DNA of 63,920 bases, filler included, from Dicyema japonicum (taxonomy: Eukaryota; Animalia; Dicyemida): the NCBI GenBank assembly GCA_011109175.1. It is 7 parts of 7 records of this genome, joined end to end, with 100 filler letters (N's around TTAATTAATTAA, not from the genome) between each part and the next. Parts side by side here need not be neighbours in the genome. Positions count along the whole stretch, not along the records: positions 7,157 to 13,633 come from RDEW01000150.1; 6 more parts are not named here. One strand, 5' to 3'. The position numbers and the translations under genes were made by a program. Positions 4,364-13,633 of this stretch are shown piece by piece (positions within the stretch are counted from its first letter, which is position 1; each line of letters begins with the position of its first letter). Under the pieces are notes generated by a model that saw nothing but the letters and a program-made list of their open reading frames with translations, did not search any database and was not told where the DNA came from.

Positions 4364-4642
4364 AAGTTAAGTTAAGTTAAGTTAGCCGTATTCAGCCGAT
4401 TCCGGGCCATTGGCGATTCTGTTGATCAAATTCCTCCACGAAACCCTGTCCTTGACGAGCTCTACAATCACGAGAAAATCATTGTCCGGCTTATTTTAAC
4501 GACCTGTGAAGACAATTTAATTTTGGTCTTCCTTGCTTTCTCTTTCCGGTGAACAAAGATTGCAAGATCAACTTGAATGAGAACAAGTTAGTAATTCTAA
4601 TTAATCCGAATTGAGAATGGGGTCCATGCTCAATATTAATCC
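4364..4642 (-). mobile_element. RTE-clade LINE 3' end with (TAACT)n tail
   Basis: Translation ..GKRKQGRPKLNC.. (GRPK C-terminal motif). Tail seen as (AAGTT)n at 4364-4385 on plus. Related copy at 6692-7056. Confidence 0.72.
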
Positions 4643-4674
4643 NNNNNNNNNNNNNNNNNNNNNNNNNNNNNNNN

Positions 4675-6412
4675 GTTCGACCGACGGGGTGGGTCCCCCC
4701 CAAAGCAGCCTCCGTCTGTCTCACACTCCTCACCGATGCTGCCACGACGACATGCTCCCCCACGTCTCCAGTTCGCTCAGCAGTGGATTGCAATGACAAT
4801 TGAACATGCGAGAGGCCGCCGTCATGTCATTCGGTCGTGTCTGTGTATCAGTTTAGGCTGCGTCGTCCGGTTTGCCCCCAACATTGCCCCCTACGCTGCC
4901 CGCGTCCTCCCCTCTTCCTCACACTCGCCAACTACCGACCACAGATGTGGCAGTCAGGGACACCGTCGTCTGGGTGCTCGGCCAGTTGTGCGAGTACGTC
5001 CCCCGACTGCGTGCTCCCCCACTTGCTCGATGGCATTGCCCCACACACTCCGCTTGTGTCTCACCCACGAACAACGAGTGGCCACCAATGCCTGCTACGT
5101 TACCATCCCCATTCACCCCCCAGGCACTCTCCAGTCTTGCTAACACTGCCGACAATCCTCGCCCCACTTCCACTCTCTCTTCCAGGCAGTCTTCGCCCTC
5201 TGCACTACACACTCTCAGTCTCCCTTCTCTCGTGTACTACGAGACTCTCATCTGTTTCATCACCCACGCCCCCAACATACTCCCTTCCCACGACATGTCT
5301 TGTGTCCTCGCCCATTATTTCCCTCCCATCGTACAATACCTCCAACAGACCTTCCAAGCTCGTCCCTGCCCAAATGGACATGATATACCACCTACAGTCA
5401 CTCCTCTGTGCACTTATCAGAGTACTCCTCCCCATCACCACAAGAGCATTGTCCTCCTCCTCCCCCTCAACTCGACGGGAGTTGCCAACTGTGCATTCAC
5501 ATGCTCTCACCTTCCTGTCTCCTCGCCACCAGGATGTCCACGAGGACGCCTTTACGCCCTCTCTGCTTTCGTGGACTGTACTCCCTCCTTACCACTCCTA
5601 GCAATGGGCAACACCCTCACTCCTTCCTCGCCCTCCTCCCCGCCTTGCTCAATATCCTCCGACCGGACAACTACGAGGAGGTTCCCCACTGTCCCCATCC
5701 CAGGTGTTGTTGGCGGGTGTCGCATTGGTCGGCGACATCAACTCGGCTGTGGGAGACCAGTTCGTGCCCTACGCCAACGCCGCCATGTCCAGTCTGTGGA
5801 ATATCCTCATCGTTGGTGTGTCTCATTATTCCCCAGAGTCCCAACACGTCTGACAAACTCAAGGCAGTCATTTTGTCCGGCTTCGGGGACTTGGCCTTGT
5901 CACTGGGGATCAGTTCGCCCCATTTGCCACCCTCGTCCTCGACACACTCCAATCTGCTGCCTCCGCCTCCTTCGACCAAGTGCCCCCTTCCCTCATGTCC
6001 AGTCCACCCAGGAAGGCCTCGCTCTCCTCTCCCAGACACACGAAGCCTGCATCCAGGCCTACACGGGAATTGTCCAGGGACTTGCTGGTGCTTTGTTGTT
6101 TAACCACCAGCATCCCACTCTTCCCTCGTCAAACCCCACGTCCCCTTTTTGTTGGAGTTTTTGAGTTCGGTGGCCGCCAACTCTGTCATTTACGACATTT
6201 CCACTTTGGACAATGTGTGCGGACTATTGGGGTGTGCCCACGTTGTCAGTGCTAGGGACATGTTGGGCATGTTTTCCACACAAACTCGCTCCCTCTTTGC
6301 CGTGGACTGCGTCAAGGAACTGTTGACGAACGAGCGACTGACATGCACCCCGAATGGGAAGAAGACTGTCAATTGGGTTAAGAAACAGTTAAGAAAGGCG
6401 AATAAGGCGTAG
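4675..6412 (+). CDS. KPNB1: Importin subunit beta-1, C-terminal ~60% (5' part lost in gap; several apparent indels)
   Basis: Motifs VRDTVVWVLGQLCEYVP, HLQSLLCAL, VHEDA, LKAVILSGFGDLALSLG, EACIQAYTGIVQGL, KKTVNWVKKQLRK*. Introns 4834-4856, 5099-5123, 5681-5703, 5812-5836, 5980-6002, 6088-6110 (23-25 nt). Stop TAG 6410-6412. Confidence 0.9.
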
Positions 6413-7156: not shown

Positions 7157-7545
7157 CGTGAGTTAACCCGAACTGATGAAAAATGGAGATACTGTAAAAA
7201 ATTGGAGTCGTTGCTTGGAGACCCTGAGGTTATCACCAACAGGAAAATGTTGGCCGTCGCGGCCTTTAGAAAAATGGGAGCAGTATGGATTCGTCGTGAA
7301 CAAATCAGCACACAATTACGTGTAAGACTATGCAATGCCTTTGTAAAACCGGTTCTAATGTACAATGCTGCAACCTCGGGAGTCTCGCAAGCCTGGATAA
7401 ACTAGATTCCTTCCACCGTAAACAACTCAGACTGCTGCTTGGCATCAACTGGCCAAAGAAAATAACAAACAAGAACTTATAAAAATATAAAAAGACATCA
7501 TTGAATCTGAACTATTTCTGCCCAGAAGTGAACAACTCGTTCCGT
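7157..7545 (+). mobile_element. RTE-like LINE fragment (post-RT region)
   Basis: LAVAAFRKMGAVWIRR..RVRLCNAFVKPVLMYNAATSG..LDSFHRKQLRLLLGINWPKKI. Shares AACTATTTCTGCCCAGAAGTGAA with the 21505-21755 segment. Confidence 0.72.
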
Positions 7546-7715
7546 TCAGTTTATTTGCAAAGTTTTTCAACATTATTATAACGCCCACAAAGAACCTTTT
7601 TAAATTTTATTTAATTTAAATTTTAAAAATATATTATTGCGTGACGTGGGCATTAATCTGACCAATAATACGCACTTAAATAAAAAAAATAATGTTAGAA
7701 ATATTGTAAAAAAAG

Positions 7716-8125
7716 TCAGTTATCTTTAAAATAGTCAATTCCTGCCTGATTAAAAAGTCCAATGTGCTAGAAAGTAAGACACAGAAATTAAACTGGGAGA
7801 TCCCTGAACTCCTGGTTGTAATCAAACCCCATCCCCACGATGAATCTGTCAGGAATACTAAACCCCACGACTATAAATAGACAAATAGTAATAAAAACAG
7901 TCTGAAGGCATCGTCGGTTTTGCCAGTCGTTTAGAAATAAAAAACGCAGTTTTTACAGAGAGGCGATCATACTCAGCCAGGACCTCCTTTAACTTAATTA
8001 TAGTCCTTCCAGTATCCACAATGTCTTTAAGGATAAGTACATCGTCAATTTGAAATGTATTAATTATTTCTACATAAATATTTTTGTATATCTCAGATTT
8101 ACTGTTGATTGGTTGCCACACCAAA
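7716..8125 (-). CDS. HPRT: Hypoxanthine-guanine phosphoribosyltransferase-like, 3' half (5' part not identified)
   Basis: [17 protein letters not shown] (PRPP loop), then intron 7871-7898, [15 protein letters not shown](F)[10 protein letters not shown] with one missing base, intron 7767-7793, [16 protein letters not shown] (TGA 7716-7718). Confidence 0.75.
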
Positions 8126-8653
8126 GCGATTAAGTAGAATAACTGGAGTCCTACATATCCGCATTGTGGAGGTAGATTCTAAAAATTCATTTCATTACCA
8201 ATAATTTCAAAAACTAAAAAAGCAGAAAATAGATTTACAGGGAATACTCGAACGGAAAGTCTGCATTTGACTGTGACTACTGTATGTGGCACTAACTAGG
8301 AATAAAAAGTGGATATTGCATTAATTAAAAAAAGGAAATAATATAAATGAACATCCGATCACATTAGTGTTAATGCTGGGCATATTAAAAGAATTTCTGT
8401 TTAACAAGACTGTGAGAAATAATTAACTGAAATCCTTTTTATTTTACACAAAAGCTGACCATTTCAGGATTAAGGCACCAACTCTTGACCCTGACTACTG
8501 CATGTAACACTAATCAGAAATAAAAAGTGGAACAGGGAAATATTGGAATGAATAATCAATCACATTAATTTCAATGCAGGGAAAATTAAGTGGAACAAGG
8601 AAATATTAAAATGAATAATCCAGTTAGTTAATTAGCTACATCGAAATATTTTA

Positions 8654-9479
8654 TCAGGTACACTCATCTCTGCATATCATATTCCTTGAAACTGGGTTGA
8701 CGCAGGGGTTGCAATCTATTGTGAGTAAACTAACCTACCAAATGCTTCCTCCGTTTTAAGCATTGCCCTCCATGGTTGATTTGCTTGTATTTTAATACTT
8801 TTGTCAGTTAAGCTGATATTCAGAGAATCAAACGAGTTTGTCGATGTCGTAATCCTTATATAAGAATATTTAAGTATACATTGTGGGTTGGGAACCCTTA
8901 CTGAATATACACATTTTCTGGTTCTCGAAAATACTACACAGTGAGTAATTTAAAATACCGAATGGTTGGGAGATGACTGAATTTTGGCAACTGAAAAGTG
9001 GCATTTTGTGGCATGTAACTTTAATGTTAGAATAAGATTTTTACAGATAATCTAAACTGACTAGATGTGCAAACGCGTCTATATCCACGTAACTCATGTC
9101 TTTACAATATTTCAGATGTCTAATGATTCAAAATATTTGAATGTACATTAAGAATAAGTTATCCAACCCATCAAATGAGTTGTTTAGTATTCTCTTTAAC
9201 GAGTCTCCAGAACAGACACTGGTATTAATGAAATGTTGATTACAATTTCTCCAAGTTGATTAAATTGGAGAATATTTCTCCATTGGGAAATGTAACGCTT
9301 CCATGAATTTTAATATATGATGTATTTTCCTCAACATGTTCTCCATTGAAAGCACAGTCTGACAACTACCTTATTTAAATTAAGCAAATCTTTAAAATCT
9401 CGTTTGTCAAGTTACAGTCACGTTGGATCACTACGTGAACAAAAAGTAGGACAAGTGCAAGCATTAGAATTAAGGTCAT
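8654..9479 (-). CDS. Secreted LRR protein resembling the glycoprotein-hormone-receptor (LGR type A) ectodomain, about 205 aa, no transmembrane domain
   Basis: Manually spliced open frame, 618 nt, 8 exons. Introns 9359-9415 (least certain), 9219-9243, 9120-9146, 9019-9044, 8934-8958, 8855-8879, 8716-8738. Protein: MTLILMLALVLLFVHVV..IFSNLINLEKFVCSGDSLKRILNNSFDGLDNLFLIHLKYCKDMSYVDIDAFAHLVSLDYLYMPQNATFQLPKFSHL..EAFDCNPCVNPVSRNMICRDECT*. Confidence 0.75.
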
Positions 9480-9512
9480 ATTTTATTGTGAATAACTCAT
9501 TGGTTAGACATT

Positions 9513-9990
9513 GAATTAATATATTTATTAAACTGTATTTGTTAATATATATTACTTTGCATTTATTTTCCGAGTTTTATTTTTCCCCGTTCTGAATCCG
9601 TTTTGACTTGGCGACAAGTATTGATCAACTGATTTTGATATGCGATTTAATGTTATATTCGAAAAAGTTTTTCGCAACATGGTCAAAAGCATTTTGAAAA
9701 TCTACTGTGTGTTTGAGGAAAGCTGGAATTCTGCGGGCTGTCAATTTAAAGAAAACACATATTGCCACGANACTTTGCATTTATTTTCCGAGTTTTATTT
9801 TTCCCCGTTCTGAATCCGTTTTGAACTGGCGACAAATATTGATCAACTGATTTTGATATGCGATTTAATGTTATAATCGAAAAAGTTTTTCGCAACATGG
9901 TCAAAAGCATTTTGAAAATTTACTGTGTGTTTGAGGAAAGCTGGAATTCTGCGGGCTGTCAATTTAAAGAAAACACATATTGCCATGATC
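9513..9990 (-). repeat. About 250-bp near-identical duplication across a single N, containing an RTE-like RT fragment
   Basis: ACTTTGCATTT..CACATATTGCCA repeated either side of N9771. Minus frame LLTMLRKTFSNITLNRISKSVDQYLSPSQNGFRTG. Confidence 0.6.
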
Positions 9991-10188
9991 GCAGGATTCT
10001 TAACACATAAGTATAATTTATATGATAATACCTTTGAAACGAATGTACGGAAACTTAAACAAGTTCAAATTGAATGGTTATGATGAAAATTAACAGCAAA
10101 TCTCTTCATTCTATGTTATTCAAATGCTTAAAAGACCCGACTACTGACATTGCATCATCTTCGGGATGGCTTGCAAAAGGGAATAATA

Positions 10189-10250
10189 TGTGACATGGGC
10201 AACGCGTTACGCATGGGCAACGCGTTACGCATGGGCAACCGGTTACATTT
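10189..10250 (+). repeat. Putative TGT-type DNA-transposon terminus with three 18-bp tandem units
   Basis: TGTGA followed by (CATGGGCAACGCGTTACG)x2 and CATGGGCAACCGGTTACA. Related two-unit terminus at 24127. Confidence 0.45.
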
Positions 10251-10473
10251 TTTGACCTTGTAGACGTCAAAATAAAACCCTTTGATTATCACAAATATTA
10301 TTTTTATGCACTAATTATAAATTTTGACTATGCCTTGTATTGATTTAAATTAGTTTTTGTTAATGTACTTAAATAATTTTAAAAAGTTATTTTTTTTTAA
10401 TGTTGGTTAACCTAAACCTATTGCAACATTTTTAGCGTGCTAGATTTATTTCTTATACTGGCTTCTTATAGAG

Positions 10474-10987
10474 CAGTGTTTCTTAACCTTTTTTGACCGG
10501 GGACCACTTTAGTCTGTTGAATTGTCCTGGGGACCACACGTAACAAACAATTTAATAAACAAACTAACAAAATTAAAAAATCATAATATTTAGAGTTAGT
10601 TTGAGTACATTTTTTAGTTCAAATGGCAGAGTTTTTGTAGCGAGTGCATATTTATGAATGCCGCAGTGTTTCGTAATTAAATGTGGTGCTACTTCTTTCA
10701 AAATTAAAAAATCATAATATTTAGAGTTAGTTTGAGTACATTTTTTAGCTCAAATGGCAGAGTTTTTGTAGCGAGTGCATATTTATGAATGCCGCAGTGT
10801 TTCGTAATTACATGTGTTGCTACTTCTTTCACCAATGTGACAAAACCAGAACGATGTCCTATCATAGCTGGTTACCCATAATTTTTTTTAGTCATAAAAA
10901 TTAATTGACTTAAAAATATTTCTGGGGACCACCTAAAATTTTCTGGGGACCACCATTGGTCCCCATGGACCACGTTAAGAAACACTG
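10474..10987. mobile_element. Non-autonomous hAT element (MITE-like deletion derivative)
   Basis: 14-bp TIR CAGTGTTTCTTAAC at both ends and perfect 8-bp TSD TTATAGAG (10466-10473, 10988-10995). Internal duplicated transposase scrap KHCGIHKYALATKTLPFELKNVL on minus. Confidence 0.92.
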
Positions 10988-11018
10988 TTATAGAGGATAT
11001 GTCAAAGATTCTTTAGAG

Positions 11019-11229
11019 CAGGGGTTCTCAACCTTTTTTTACTCGTCGACCCCTTGATTTTTTTTTCGACCCCCTTAAAACTTTTTTATATAAAACAGAC
11101 AACTATAAGTAAAATTAGTTAACTAATCATCTAAAATGAATTCATTGTTAATAATCAAACAAAAAAACTCGATGTTAAGTTAGTATCTGAGTATAAATCT
11201 ATAATAAAAAACAATTAAATACCAATGGG
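11019..11229 (+). mobile_element. hAT terminus fragment
   Basis: CAGGGGTTCTCAACC after CTTTAGAG with CGACCCC subterminal motifs; cut at N11230. Confidence 0.6.
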
Positions 11230-11230
11230 N

Positions 11231-12865
11231 CCTAAAACCAGGTTTTTTTTCTCGCGGCACATATTAGTTAGAAATGTTTTTTTAATTAATATATTCAAGA
11301 AACTTAACAAAAAAATTACAAAAAGTAATTATGATAACTAATGAGACACTTGTGCTTGTTTATGTGTACACAAAATTTCCAGACGGGGACGAATTTGCGA
11401 CAAACATACCCGGAGGTCATTTTCAATTGACAACAACCTGTTTCTGTTTTTTGATTTAATGTCGACGAGACAAGAGAAAGCTTGTTCACACTTATATGAT
11501 GTTGAAAACTGAAGCAATATTTTTATTGCTTTTTTAAAAATTGAAAGACAAGAATCTTTAATGGAANTACACAAAATTTCCAGACAGGGACGAATTTGCG
11601 ACAAACATACCCGGAGGTCATCTTCAATTGACAACAACCTGTTTCTGTTTTTTGATTTAATGTCGACGAGACAAGAGAAAGCTTGTTCACACTTATATGA
11701 TGTTGAGAACTGAAGCAATATTTTTATTTCTTTTTTAAAAATTGAAGGATAAAAATCTTTTATGAAAATCCAAAACATATCTGTCGACAATTCATCAAAT
11801 TTCATTTTTAATGTGCGGTCATATCGAAGTTGGCAAAGCTCCTTCTCTTCTGTTAGAGTAAGTTGATAGTCACATGATTCTGAGAATGGATTTCTAATCC
11901 AATCATATATTTCAATATTAAGGGAAGGAAAATAATGATTAATGCTCTTTTCCAATTATTCTAGATGAGATAAAATACAATCACTAATCTCATTATCAAC
12001 TAAAATATTCTTATCTTTGTATGTATAATACCTTGTATGCTTTGCAATAATGGGAACATTTCTATTCTTTAAGTTTAACATGATTCTTTTAAATATTCAG
12101 TTTTTGTTTAGATCCAAGAATTTTATCAGTTGAGGTTAACACATTCTCAAAATTTTTTTGTAAAAACTTATTTAAAGAATTTTTATGTTTAAATATATCC
12201 GTTAAATACGCCAACCTATTAAAATATTATCAAAAAACTATTCAGAATTACCTTAGTAACCATTCTTTATTTTCGAAACATGAAACAAAATAAATTTTAT
12301 TTATGTGTCAAAAATATTGGCACATTTCTTTTTTTAGTTCATATCCTGTGCCTAAAATTTTCCTTCGGCTAATTCATTTGATGTCTGTGTGGAATAATAG
12401 AGTAGTATGTTCTTTATCAAAATCTTGACACAAATTTTTAAATGATCAAAAAAGAAGAGGCCTTTTTTTATTAAAATTGATCATTTTGATAACGTCGGTA
12501 AGAACATTTTTTAGTTCTTCTCCGAGAGTTTTAAAAACCAGTACTTCTCTGTGAATGAAGCAATGTGTTGTGACAATTTCATGATTTTCTTGTTTTGCAA
12601 AAGCGACAAATCCATTGCTAGATCCAACTATTGAGGGAGCACTATCTGTGCAAATTCCAATACAATTTTTCCATGATATATTATTCTGCTCGAAATATGT
12701 GGATACAAGATTGAATATATCTTTTCAATAGTGTGATTCTTGCGGTTTTTAGATATAAGCTCAGAATATAAATAATTTTTAATTTTAAATATTAAAAATT
12801 TCGCGGCACCTAAACCAGATCTCGCGGCACAAAAAGTGCCGCGGCACCCCGGTTGGGAATCGCTG
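11231..12865 (-). mobile_element. Decayed hAT (Charlie/Buster; ZBED8/FAM200-like) transposon
   Basis: ORF 11338-11955 ..ILLQFSTSYKCEQAFSCLVDIKSKNRNRL (hAT dimerisation domain). Upstream CIGICTDSAPSIVG and THCFIHRE with stops and frameshifts. TIR CAGCGATTCCCAACC at 12865 with GCGGCAC subterminal repeats. Confidence 0.88.
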
Positions 12866-13189
12866 CTCTAGACGTTACATATTGATNGAATAAATGCGTA
12901 TTTTTTTTTTATTAGCCAAAGATCCAAACCACCAATTCAAACTCATAACTAGCTATTTTAATTTTTTTAAAAGTTTTTAAAAATTAAATTAAAATATTAT
13001 TACACAAATATAAATAATTTTTAATTTTAAATATTAAAAATCTCGCGGCACCTAAACCAGATCTCGCTTAAAAAAATATGCTCATATATAAATTTCGACT
13101 TTTTATACTCATTTCTATATTCAGACGCTTCAATGATTTAATTATTATTTTTAATTAGTTAATATCATTAAACCAGTTAGGTACTCGGA

Positions 13190-13633
13190 GGAATTGCCAG
13201 GGAGCAAAGGAGCAGGCATTGGTCAACAAGTGCCTCGCGAGAGCCCACGGAAACTCACTAGTGTCGATGTGGGTGGATGTGAAGAAGGCATATGACTCGG
13301 TTGACCATGCCTACCTCGTTGAGTGCCTGCGAAGACTCAAGTTGCCTTCGTGGTTTATCAAATTTGTTGGAACTGTGATGGACAGGTGGAATGTGCATCT
13401 ACACTACAACAAATGCGATATAGGCGGGGTTAAGCTAGAGAGGGGCATATTACAGGGCGACAGCATGTCTCCATTGCTGTTTGTCCTCTGCCTAGAACCG
13501 CTGAGTAGAGTCCTCACTGCCCAATACGAACAAATGTCGATCGAGCATGATGGAGGGTGTTTTAGCACCAACCATCTCATGTTCATAGACGACATTAAAC
13601 TGTTCGCTCGGTCTTCAGAGATCCTCCACTCAA
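13190..13633 (+). mobile_element. RLE-type (R4/NeSL-like) non-LTR RT fragment
   Basis: GAKEQALVNKC..WVDVKKAYDSVDH..RGILQGDSMSPLLFVLCLEPLS..NHLMFIDDIKLF; cut by spacer. Confidence 0.88.

Follow-up and report, generated by a model that had tools for sequence, protein, structure and literature searches.

A genuine-looking gene for a small LRR protein, predicted to be secreted and split by very short introns, in a Dicyema japonicum assembly

The window that we have analysed comprises 63,920 nt of the Dicyema japonicum assembly GCA_011109175.1, in which seven parts are joined end to end with fillers of 100 nt, and the piece of interest (positions 7157-13633, RDEW01000150.1) carries on its minus strand a gene that looks genuine and had so far been invisible, coding for a small, apparently secreted LRR protein without a membrane domain. 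The gene model, which has been rebuilt from the splice-site strings, runs from an ATG at 9479-9477 to a TGA at 8656-8654, and an in-frame stop is located two codons upstream of the ATG. Its eight exons (9479 to 8654) sum to a frame of 618 nt, i.e., 205 codons plus the TGA, which is exactly the exon number and the hidden frame that the initial annotation of this locus had proposed. On the same strand, the LRR gene is followed by a gene resembling HPRT, so that the following features can be listed for the two genes:

9416-9479, minus strand: exon 1, 64 nt; the ATG and a 17-residue hydrophobic signal-like segment; ends in phase 1
9359-9415, minus strand: intron 1, 57 nt, GTA...AG, phase 1; in frame, with two stops and Cys in its translation
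9244-9358, minus strand: exon 2, 115 nt; a short N-terminal stretch, one Cys, an NTS sequon and the first LRR unit
9219-9243, minus strand: intron 2, 25 nt, GTA...AG, phase 2
9147-9218, minus strand: exon 3, 72 nt; one LRR unit
9120-9146, minus strand: intron 3, 27 nt, GTA...AG, phase 2
9045-9119, minus strand: exon 4, 75 nt; one LRR unit
9019-9044, minus strand: intron 4, 26 nt, GTA...AG, phase 2; branch-like motif CTAAC
8959-9018, minus strand: exon 5, 60 nt; a short LRR unit with an NAT sequon and an LP motif; the 3' end depends on the model
8934-8958, minus strand: intron 5, 25 nt, GTA...AG, phase 2; branch-like motif TACTCAC; partly coding in an alternative model
8880-8933, minus strand: exon 6, 54 nt; lowest in LRR likeness and in certainty among the exons, aligning poorly with the other units
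8855-8879, minus strand: intron 6, 25 nt, GTA...AG, phase 2
8739-8854, minus strand: exon 7, 116 nt; the last LRR-like unit or units, an NIS sequon and an NQPW stretch; ends in ...EEAF
8716-8738, minus strand: intron 7, 23 nt, GTA...AG, phase 1; branch-like motif TACTCAC
8654-8715, minus strand: exon 8, 62 nt including the TGA; C-x2-C-x9-C-x3-C tail, without a hydrophobic tail
7788-8124, minus strand: 3' part of the HPRT-like gene; exon 8124-7899, intron 7898-7871 (28 nt), exon 7870-7788

The introns of the LRR gene measure 57, 25, 27, 26, 25, 25 and 23 nt, six of them falling within the narrow band of 23-27 nt. All seven begin with a GTA donor and end with an AG acceptor, and in three of them a branch-like CTAAC or TACTCAC has been found 8-12 nt before the AG. 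Their phases in order are 1, 2, 2, 2, 2, 2 and 1; the run of five consecutive phase-2 introns and the exons of 72 and 75 nt, both of which had already been pointed out, are all present in the rebuilt model. Among animals, introns shorter than 30 nt have been reported only in D. japonicum and in myxobolid myxozoans, and in both of these the splice signals are reduced to 'GTa' and 'AG' (PMC13644364). The introns described here fit these reduced signals as well as the reported sizes. Because they are only 23-27 nt long, the LRR gene is invisible to ORF-based tracks, and it neatly illustrates what such tracks miss.

Regarding the certainty of the model, the first four and the last two exons are identical in all three models that we have considered, whereas the middle from exon 5 to exon 7 has at least three frame-compatible solutions. 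In alternative model A, a single 20-nt intron (8937-8918) takes the place of introns 5 and 6, which results in a frame of 645 nt and nine Cys, and in alternative model B an exon 6 of 21 nt is combined with a 58-nt intron to give a frame of 585 nt. The 618-nt model is preferable to both, since its two introns in this region have, at 25 nt, the usual size and its Cys count is even. Intron 1, which has double the usual length and the appearance of decayed coding sequence, may be the relic of an N-terminal cap.

The neighbouring gene has been of value for judging these introns. The HPRT-like gene shows a Pfam Pribosyltran match (E 5e-7), and removal of its 28-nt GT...AG intron joins ...KPTMPSD to a further stretch of 25 residues and restores a continuous sequence of 13 residues across the junction, which we take to be the conserved HPRT C-terminal motif. 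The protein itself is presumably highly divergent from animal HPRT, a word search with the HPRT ORF has found no orthologous locus, and the gene probably extends to about 8500. As the 28-nt intron is supported by homology, introns below 30 nt characterise this genome and are no product of the LRR model. The HPRT-like gene bears equally on what may follow the LRR gene. From the stop of the LRR gene to the HPRT ORF there is an AT-rich spacer of ∼530 nt with dense stops in all three frames, and on the minus strand from 8654 to 8125 no frame contains a hydrophobic 19-aa window (Kyte-Doolittle of at least 1.8). A 7TM region cannot follow, as the HPRT-like gene already starts within ∼530 nt on this strand, and the stop-dense spacer, the missing hydrophobic segment and the neighbour gene together support the reading of a stand-alone protein without an anchor. 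The initial annotation had described a complete, stand-alone gene, in which a stop follows the CNPC motif and no TM exon is visible downstream, and this description has held in both respects: the signal-like start, the LRRs, the Cys-rich end and the stop have all been found. Within the spacer, at 8527-8640, we have further observed two diverged copies of a ∼57-nt element, which could be 3' UTR or promoter sequence.

The protein starts with a hydrophobic segment of 17 residues (residues 2-18), which marks the most hydrophobic 19-residue window in any frame of the piece 7157-13633 (Kyte-Doolittle 2.61), in agreement with the signal-like N-terminus that had been suggested. The segment has no basic n-region and is followed by a weak possible V-x-Q cleavage site, and a single Cys (residue 23) stands between it and the first LRR. 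The predicted mature protein contains eight Cys, four of them scattered and four gathered in the C-terminal C-x2-C-x9-C-x3-C cluster, whereby the ending EAFDCNPC..C..C* is present as originally read. Four N-x-S/T sequons have been counted in the protein, and its C-terminus carries neither a hydrophobic tail nor an anchor.

Four of the repeat units, encoded by exons 3, 4 and 5 and by the end of exon 2 (its last 24 residues), align in register and share an invariant F and L. They show the arrangement of the 'typical' class, namely tandem units of 20-26 residues with an LxxLxLxxN/CxL core that is followed by xxLPxxxFxxLxx. A 21-position profile of these four exon units has matched 21 PDB sequences at E up to 10, all of which are LRR ectodomains; the best match is a lamprey VLR (E 7e-4), and the others include TLR4-VLR hybrids, TLR3 and LRRC15. 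These matches are direct evidence for LRR modules in the exons, and the modules belong to the 'typical' extracellular class. Of the earlier estimate of about four LRRs, the LRR nature has thus been retained and the number has not, as by eye there are five to six units, most of them encoded one per exon.

Searches with smaller parts of the gene have been far less productive. Pfam has returned no family even at E 10 for five in-frame exon translations, the C-terminal 20 aa and two ORFs over exons 2 and 6, and phmmer against the PDB has given no match for exons 2, 4 and 8 and chance-level matches of exon 7 to NDUEG3 and YojF. With exon 2, a HMMER search of the representative library has produced four matches, to repetitive SAM, MORN, CHRD and Calx-beta proteins, none of which is an LRR protein and none identical, and the ESM Atlas has yielded no usable match. 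Rfam has matched nothing on the piece 7157-13633. Since no homologue has been found for any exon searched singly, selection on the gene receives no support from conservation.

Short GT...AG introns can be selected freely in AT-rich DNA, and for this reason the chance of threading such a frame had to be measured. When GTA donors and introns of 20-60 nt were allowed, a frame was threadable in 2 of 200 dinucleotide shuffles of the locus (1%), and with any GT donor 14 of the 200 shuffles needed six introns or fewer. As a natural control, 454 windows of 823 nt have been taken from both strands of the piece 7157-13633: the LRR locus threads with 178-208 nt of intron in total, and elsewhere threading needs 273-360 nt. 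The only other threadable stretch (12482-13600, minus strand, with six or seven GTA...AG introns amounting to 273-360 nt) lies antisense to the RT ORF and is probably a by-product of it. In the LRR gene, the exon boundaries recur at one and the same position from repeat unit to repeat unit, a register that counts against chance because chance threading would not give it. It is unlikely that the LRR gene has been threaded by chance.

These measurements bear on the reading that the locus is decaying or has never been functional, being either the pseudogene remnant of a longer LRR gene or an open frame that results from the free choice of introns in AT-rich DNA. Such a locus would leave every exon without a homologue in the exon-by-exon searches and the middle of the model ambiguous, it would fit the in-frame, Cys-bearing intron 1, whose two stops resemble a degraded N-cap, and it finds some encouragement in the few shuffles and the one other natural stretch that are likewise threadable. 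We nevertheless consider it unlikely, as GTA threading succeeds in so few of the shuffles and no other stretch of the piece achieves it with an equally low amount of intron, as all seven donors are GTA and six introns keep to 23-27 nt, and as the boundaries are in register with an LRR unit whose profile reaches E 7e-4 against PDB LRR proteins; the signal-like start, the even Cys count and the clean stop point in the same direction. Separately, a processed pseudogene with indels has been ruled out on the basis of the GTA...AG ends, the narrow size band and the in-register positions of the introns.

We regard it as reasonably probable that the locus is a real and intact gene of an ultra-short-intron animal, most likely a dicyemid, and that it encodes a secreted LRR protein of ∼205 aa which lacks an anchor and captures a protein ligand. 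In this protein, the N-terminal signal sequence would route the chain into the secretory pathway, and the five to six LRRs of the remainder may fold into a short, curved solenoid that would carry N-glycans and be capped at its C-terminal end by the small group of four cysteines. Having no transmembrane segment, no GPI-type tail and no 7TM domain, the product would be released as a soluble protein-binding module, with the concave beta-sheet face of the solenoid as the putative site at which a protein ligand is captured.

In its general architecture, in which a predicted signal is followed by a few LRRs of 22-25 residues with the pattern xxLPxxxFxxLxxLxxL and by a Cys cap, the protein resembles the VLRs of lamprey and hagfish, the repeats of TLR ectodomains and LRRC15, and no other class has given significant PDB matches with the exon-unit profile. 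Unlike the VLR-type proteins, it has no four-Cys LRRNT cap, no stalk and no anchor, and its repeats are encoded one per exon. Its C-terminal cluster is much shorter than the LRRCT of those proteins and does not have the NPWxCxC spacing, so that C-x2-C-x9-C-x3-C misfits an LRRCT. Judged from these sequence features, the likeness appears to be one of repeat class and not a family relationship, and we have treated the protein as a generic extracellular LRR protein of the 'typical' class.

A more specific identity had been proposed by the initial annotation, which read the gene as the ectodomain of an LGR or glycoprotein-hormone receptor. Such an ectodomain would have been freed by the loss of 7TM exons or by the duplication of ectodomain exons, and, in soluble form, would bind cystine-knot hormones or act as a decoy for them, with the hormones of the host as a possible target. 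What speaks for this origin is above all the layout of the gene. The ectodomains of LGRs and glycoprotein-hormone receptors (FSHR, TSHR, LHCGR, LGR4-6) are put together from exons of ∼72-75 nt that each hold one repeat and are separated by introns in phase 2, an arrangement found in the genes of FSHR, LHCGR and TSHR as well as in the LGR genes of the sea anemone (cnidarian) and the fly (insect), and the LRR gene is alike in this respect: its exons of 72, 75, 60 and 54 nt, most with an LRR unit of their own, are bounded by five phase-2 introns at a fixed position of the repeat, and the register is kept. LGR hinges further contain a CCAF-type box after the last LRR and an F-N/K-P-C-E box before TM1, and the 'EEAFDCNPC' at the end of the LRR region, an 'AF..NPC' stretch, loosely recalls the AFNPCE form of the latter. 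A soluble LGR ectodomain is known as well, namely the splice variant Lgr4-ED (PMC4154783), and the organism is probably an endoparasite.

One LRR per exon of ∼72 nt, with the same phase throughout, has also been reported for Slit and other human LRR families of the S/T class (PMC6642158) and for the ROCO genes of the brown alga Ectocarpus (PMC3341825); this layout, which permits exon duplication, is not exclusive to LGRs. The LRR gene shares the exon layout with these genes and differs from them in that Slit and ROCO are large multidomain proteins, whereas the present one has just 205 aa, consists of a putative signal, LRRs and a Cys tail only, and is interrupted by introns of 23-27 nt. The resemblance at the end of the LRR region is a loose one: 'AFDCNPC' matches 'AFNPC' only when a two-residue insertion is allowed, it is followed by 15 residues and the stop, and no CC pair of the CCAF type is present. 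Lgr4-ED, in turn, is a product of splicing, whereas the stop of the LRR gene is genomic and no 7TM exon lies nearby.

Four features define an LGR (PMC4079206, PMC9545775): a Cys-rich cap at the N-terminus, 7-18 LRRs, a hinge that bears conserved boxes, and a 7TM domain of the rhodopsin type behind the ectodomain. Compared with this build, the LRR gene ends at the TGA (8656-8654) with no hydrophobic segment as far as 8125, it has five to six LRRs against the 7-18 of canonical LGRs (PMC9545775), it lacks a hinge, and only one Cys precedes its first LRR in place of a cap, further Cys-bearing in-frame sequence being confined to intron 1 with its two stops. In the searches, single exons have drawn blanks, and the 21-position profile, built from the four exon units of the LRR region, ranks VLR, TLR and LRRC15 first, with an LGR4-VLR chimera (E 0.63) below the VLR and TLR entries as the only LGR entry matched in the PDB, and contains no FSHR, TSHR or LHCGR chain at E up to 10. 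The manual alignment that had been put forward in favour of the hormone receptors amounts to ∼30% identity (about 12/40 and 5/11), nearly all of it at generic LRR consensus positions; the shared positions are mostly L, I and F and the 'AF..L..L.YL' skeleton that is common to most extracellular LRRs. The assignment to the hormone receptors is not supported by these comparisons. We consider descent from an LGR doubtful, a lead and not a result.

Still more improbable is the far-reaching version of this idea, in which a dicyemid gene has arisen from LGR ectodomain exons and its secreted product binds cystine-knot hormones of the octopus host in the renal sac, as a decoy made by the parasite; the candidate ligands would then be of the GPA2/GPB5, bursicon or norrin/R-spondin type. 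The decoy reading draws only on the gene layout and a short motif and is possible but unsupported; if it were true, a receptor ectodomain turned hormone decoy would represent a new kind of host manipulation. The gene set of D. japonicum is very reduced, with about 5,000 genes (PMC6736024), and the LRR gene, provided that it is real, contributes to this set a small LRR protein for secretion; in a parasite of this kind, secreted binding proteins are candidates for making contact with the host.

It is very unlikely that the protein is instead the ectodomain of a membrane protein, held by an uncleaved type-II N-terminal anchor or by a transmembrane exon gained through alternative splicing past the stop: the hydrophobic segment without a basic n-region, its weak V-x-Q site and a candidate 26-nt GTA...AG intron across the stop codon would allow for it, but the hydrophobic run is just 17 residues long, use of the candidate intron leads to a new stop two codons on, the minus strand from 8654 to 8125 has no hydrophobic segment in any frame, and the HPRT-like gene lies directly downstream.

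The surroundings of the two genes are of interest with regard to the source of the DNA. A LINE reverse-transcriptase fragment (13084-13633, plus strand) occupies the right edge of the piece, and its nucleotides 13171-13631 show 94% DNA identity over 461 nt to the Octopus sinensis contig VCDQ01004311.1; the octopus counterpart lies at 4518-5564 of the octopus locus L001, and against an annotated octopus protein the fragment reaches 97% identity over 33 aa. The D. japonicum that has been sequenced had O. sinensis as its host (PMC6736024). The octopus-like LINE has either been transferred as a transposon between host and parasite or is host DNA that has been joined into the assembly, and between it and the genes with tiny introns there are single Ns only and no gap. 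The possibility that the LRR locus itself is an octopus gene has been ruled out, as a 28-nt HPRT intron and introns of 23-27 nt are unfit for a cephalopod; the one octopus gene seen for comparison, in L001, takes up 2.9 kb for 304 aa. A dicyemid origin is the most likely one, and a myxozoan origin is less probable in view of the octopus-like LINE. The earlier supposition of an endoparasite is very probably correct, given the introns below 30 nt and the LINE that matches the octopus host of dicyemids.

Three tandem duplications of two copies each have additionally been found at 9554-9985, 10568-10831 and 11367-11764, with periods of 218, 131 and 201 nt and 95-97% identity between the copies; they could be real or could be artefacts of assembling a heterozygous sample. 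The last of them repeats part of an ORF for a hAT dimerisation domain (11338-11955, minus strand), for which a word search has given matches at 64% identity or less. At the opposite end of the piece, a second retroelement fragment (7157-7500, plus strand), which has no nucleotide match to the octopus locus L001, adjoins the 3' side of the HPRT-like gene, and it translates into what looks like the C-terminal portion of a LINE reverse transcriptase.
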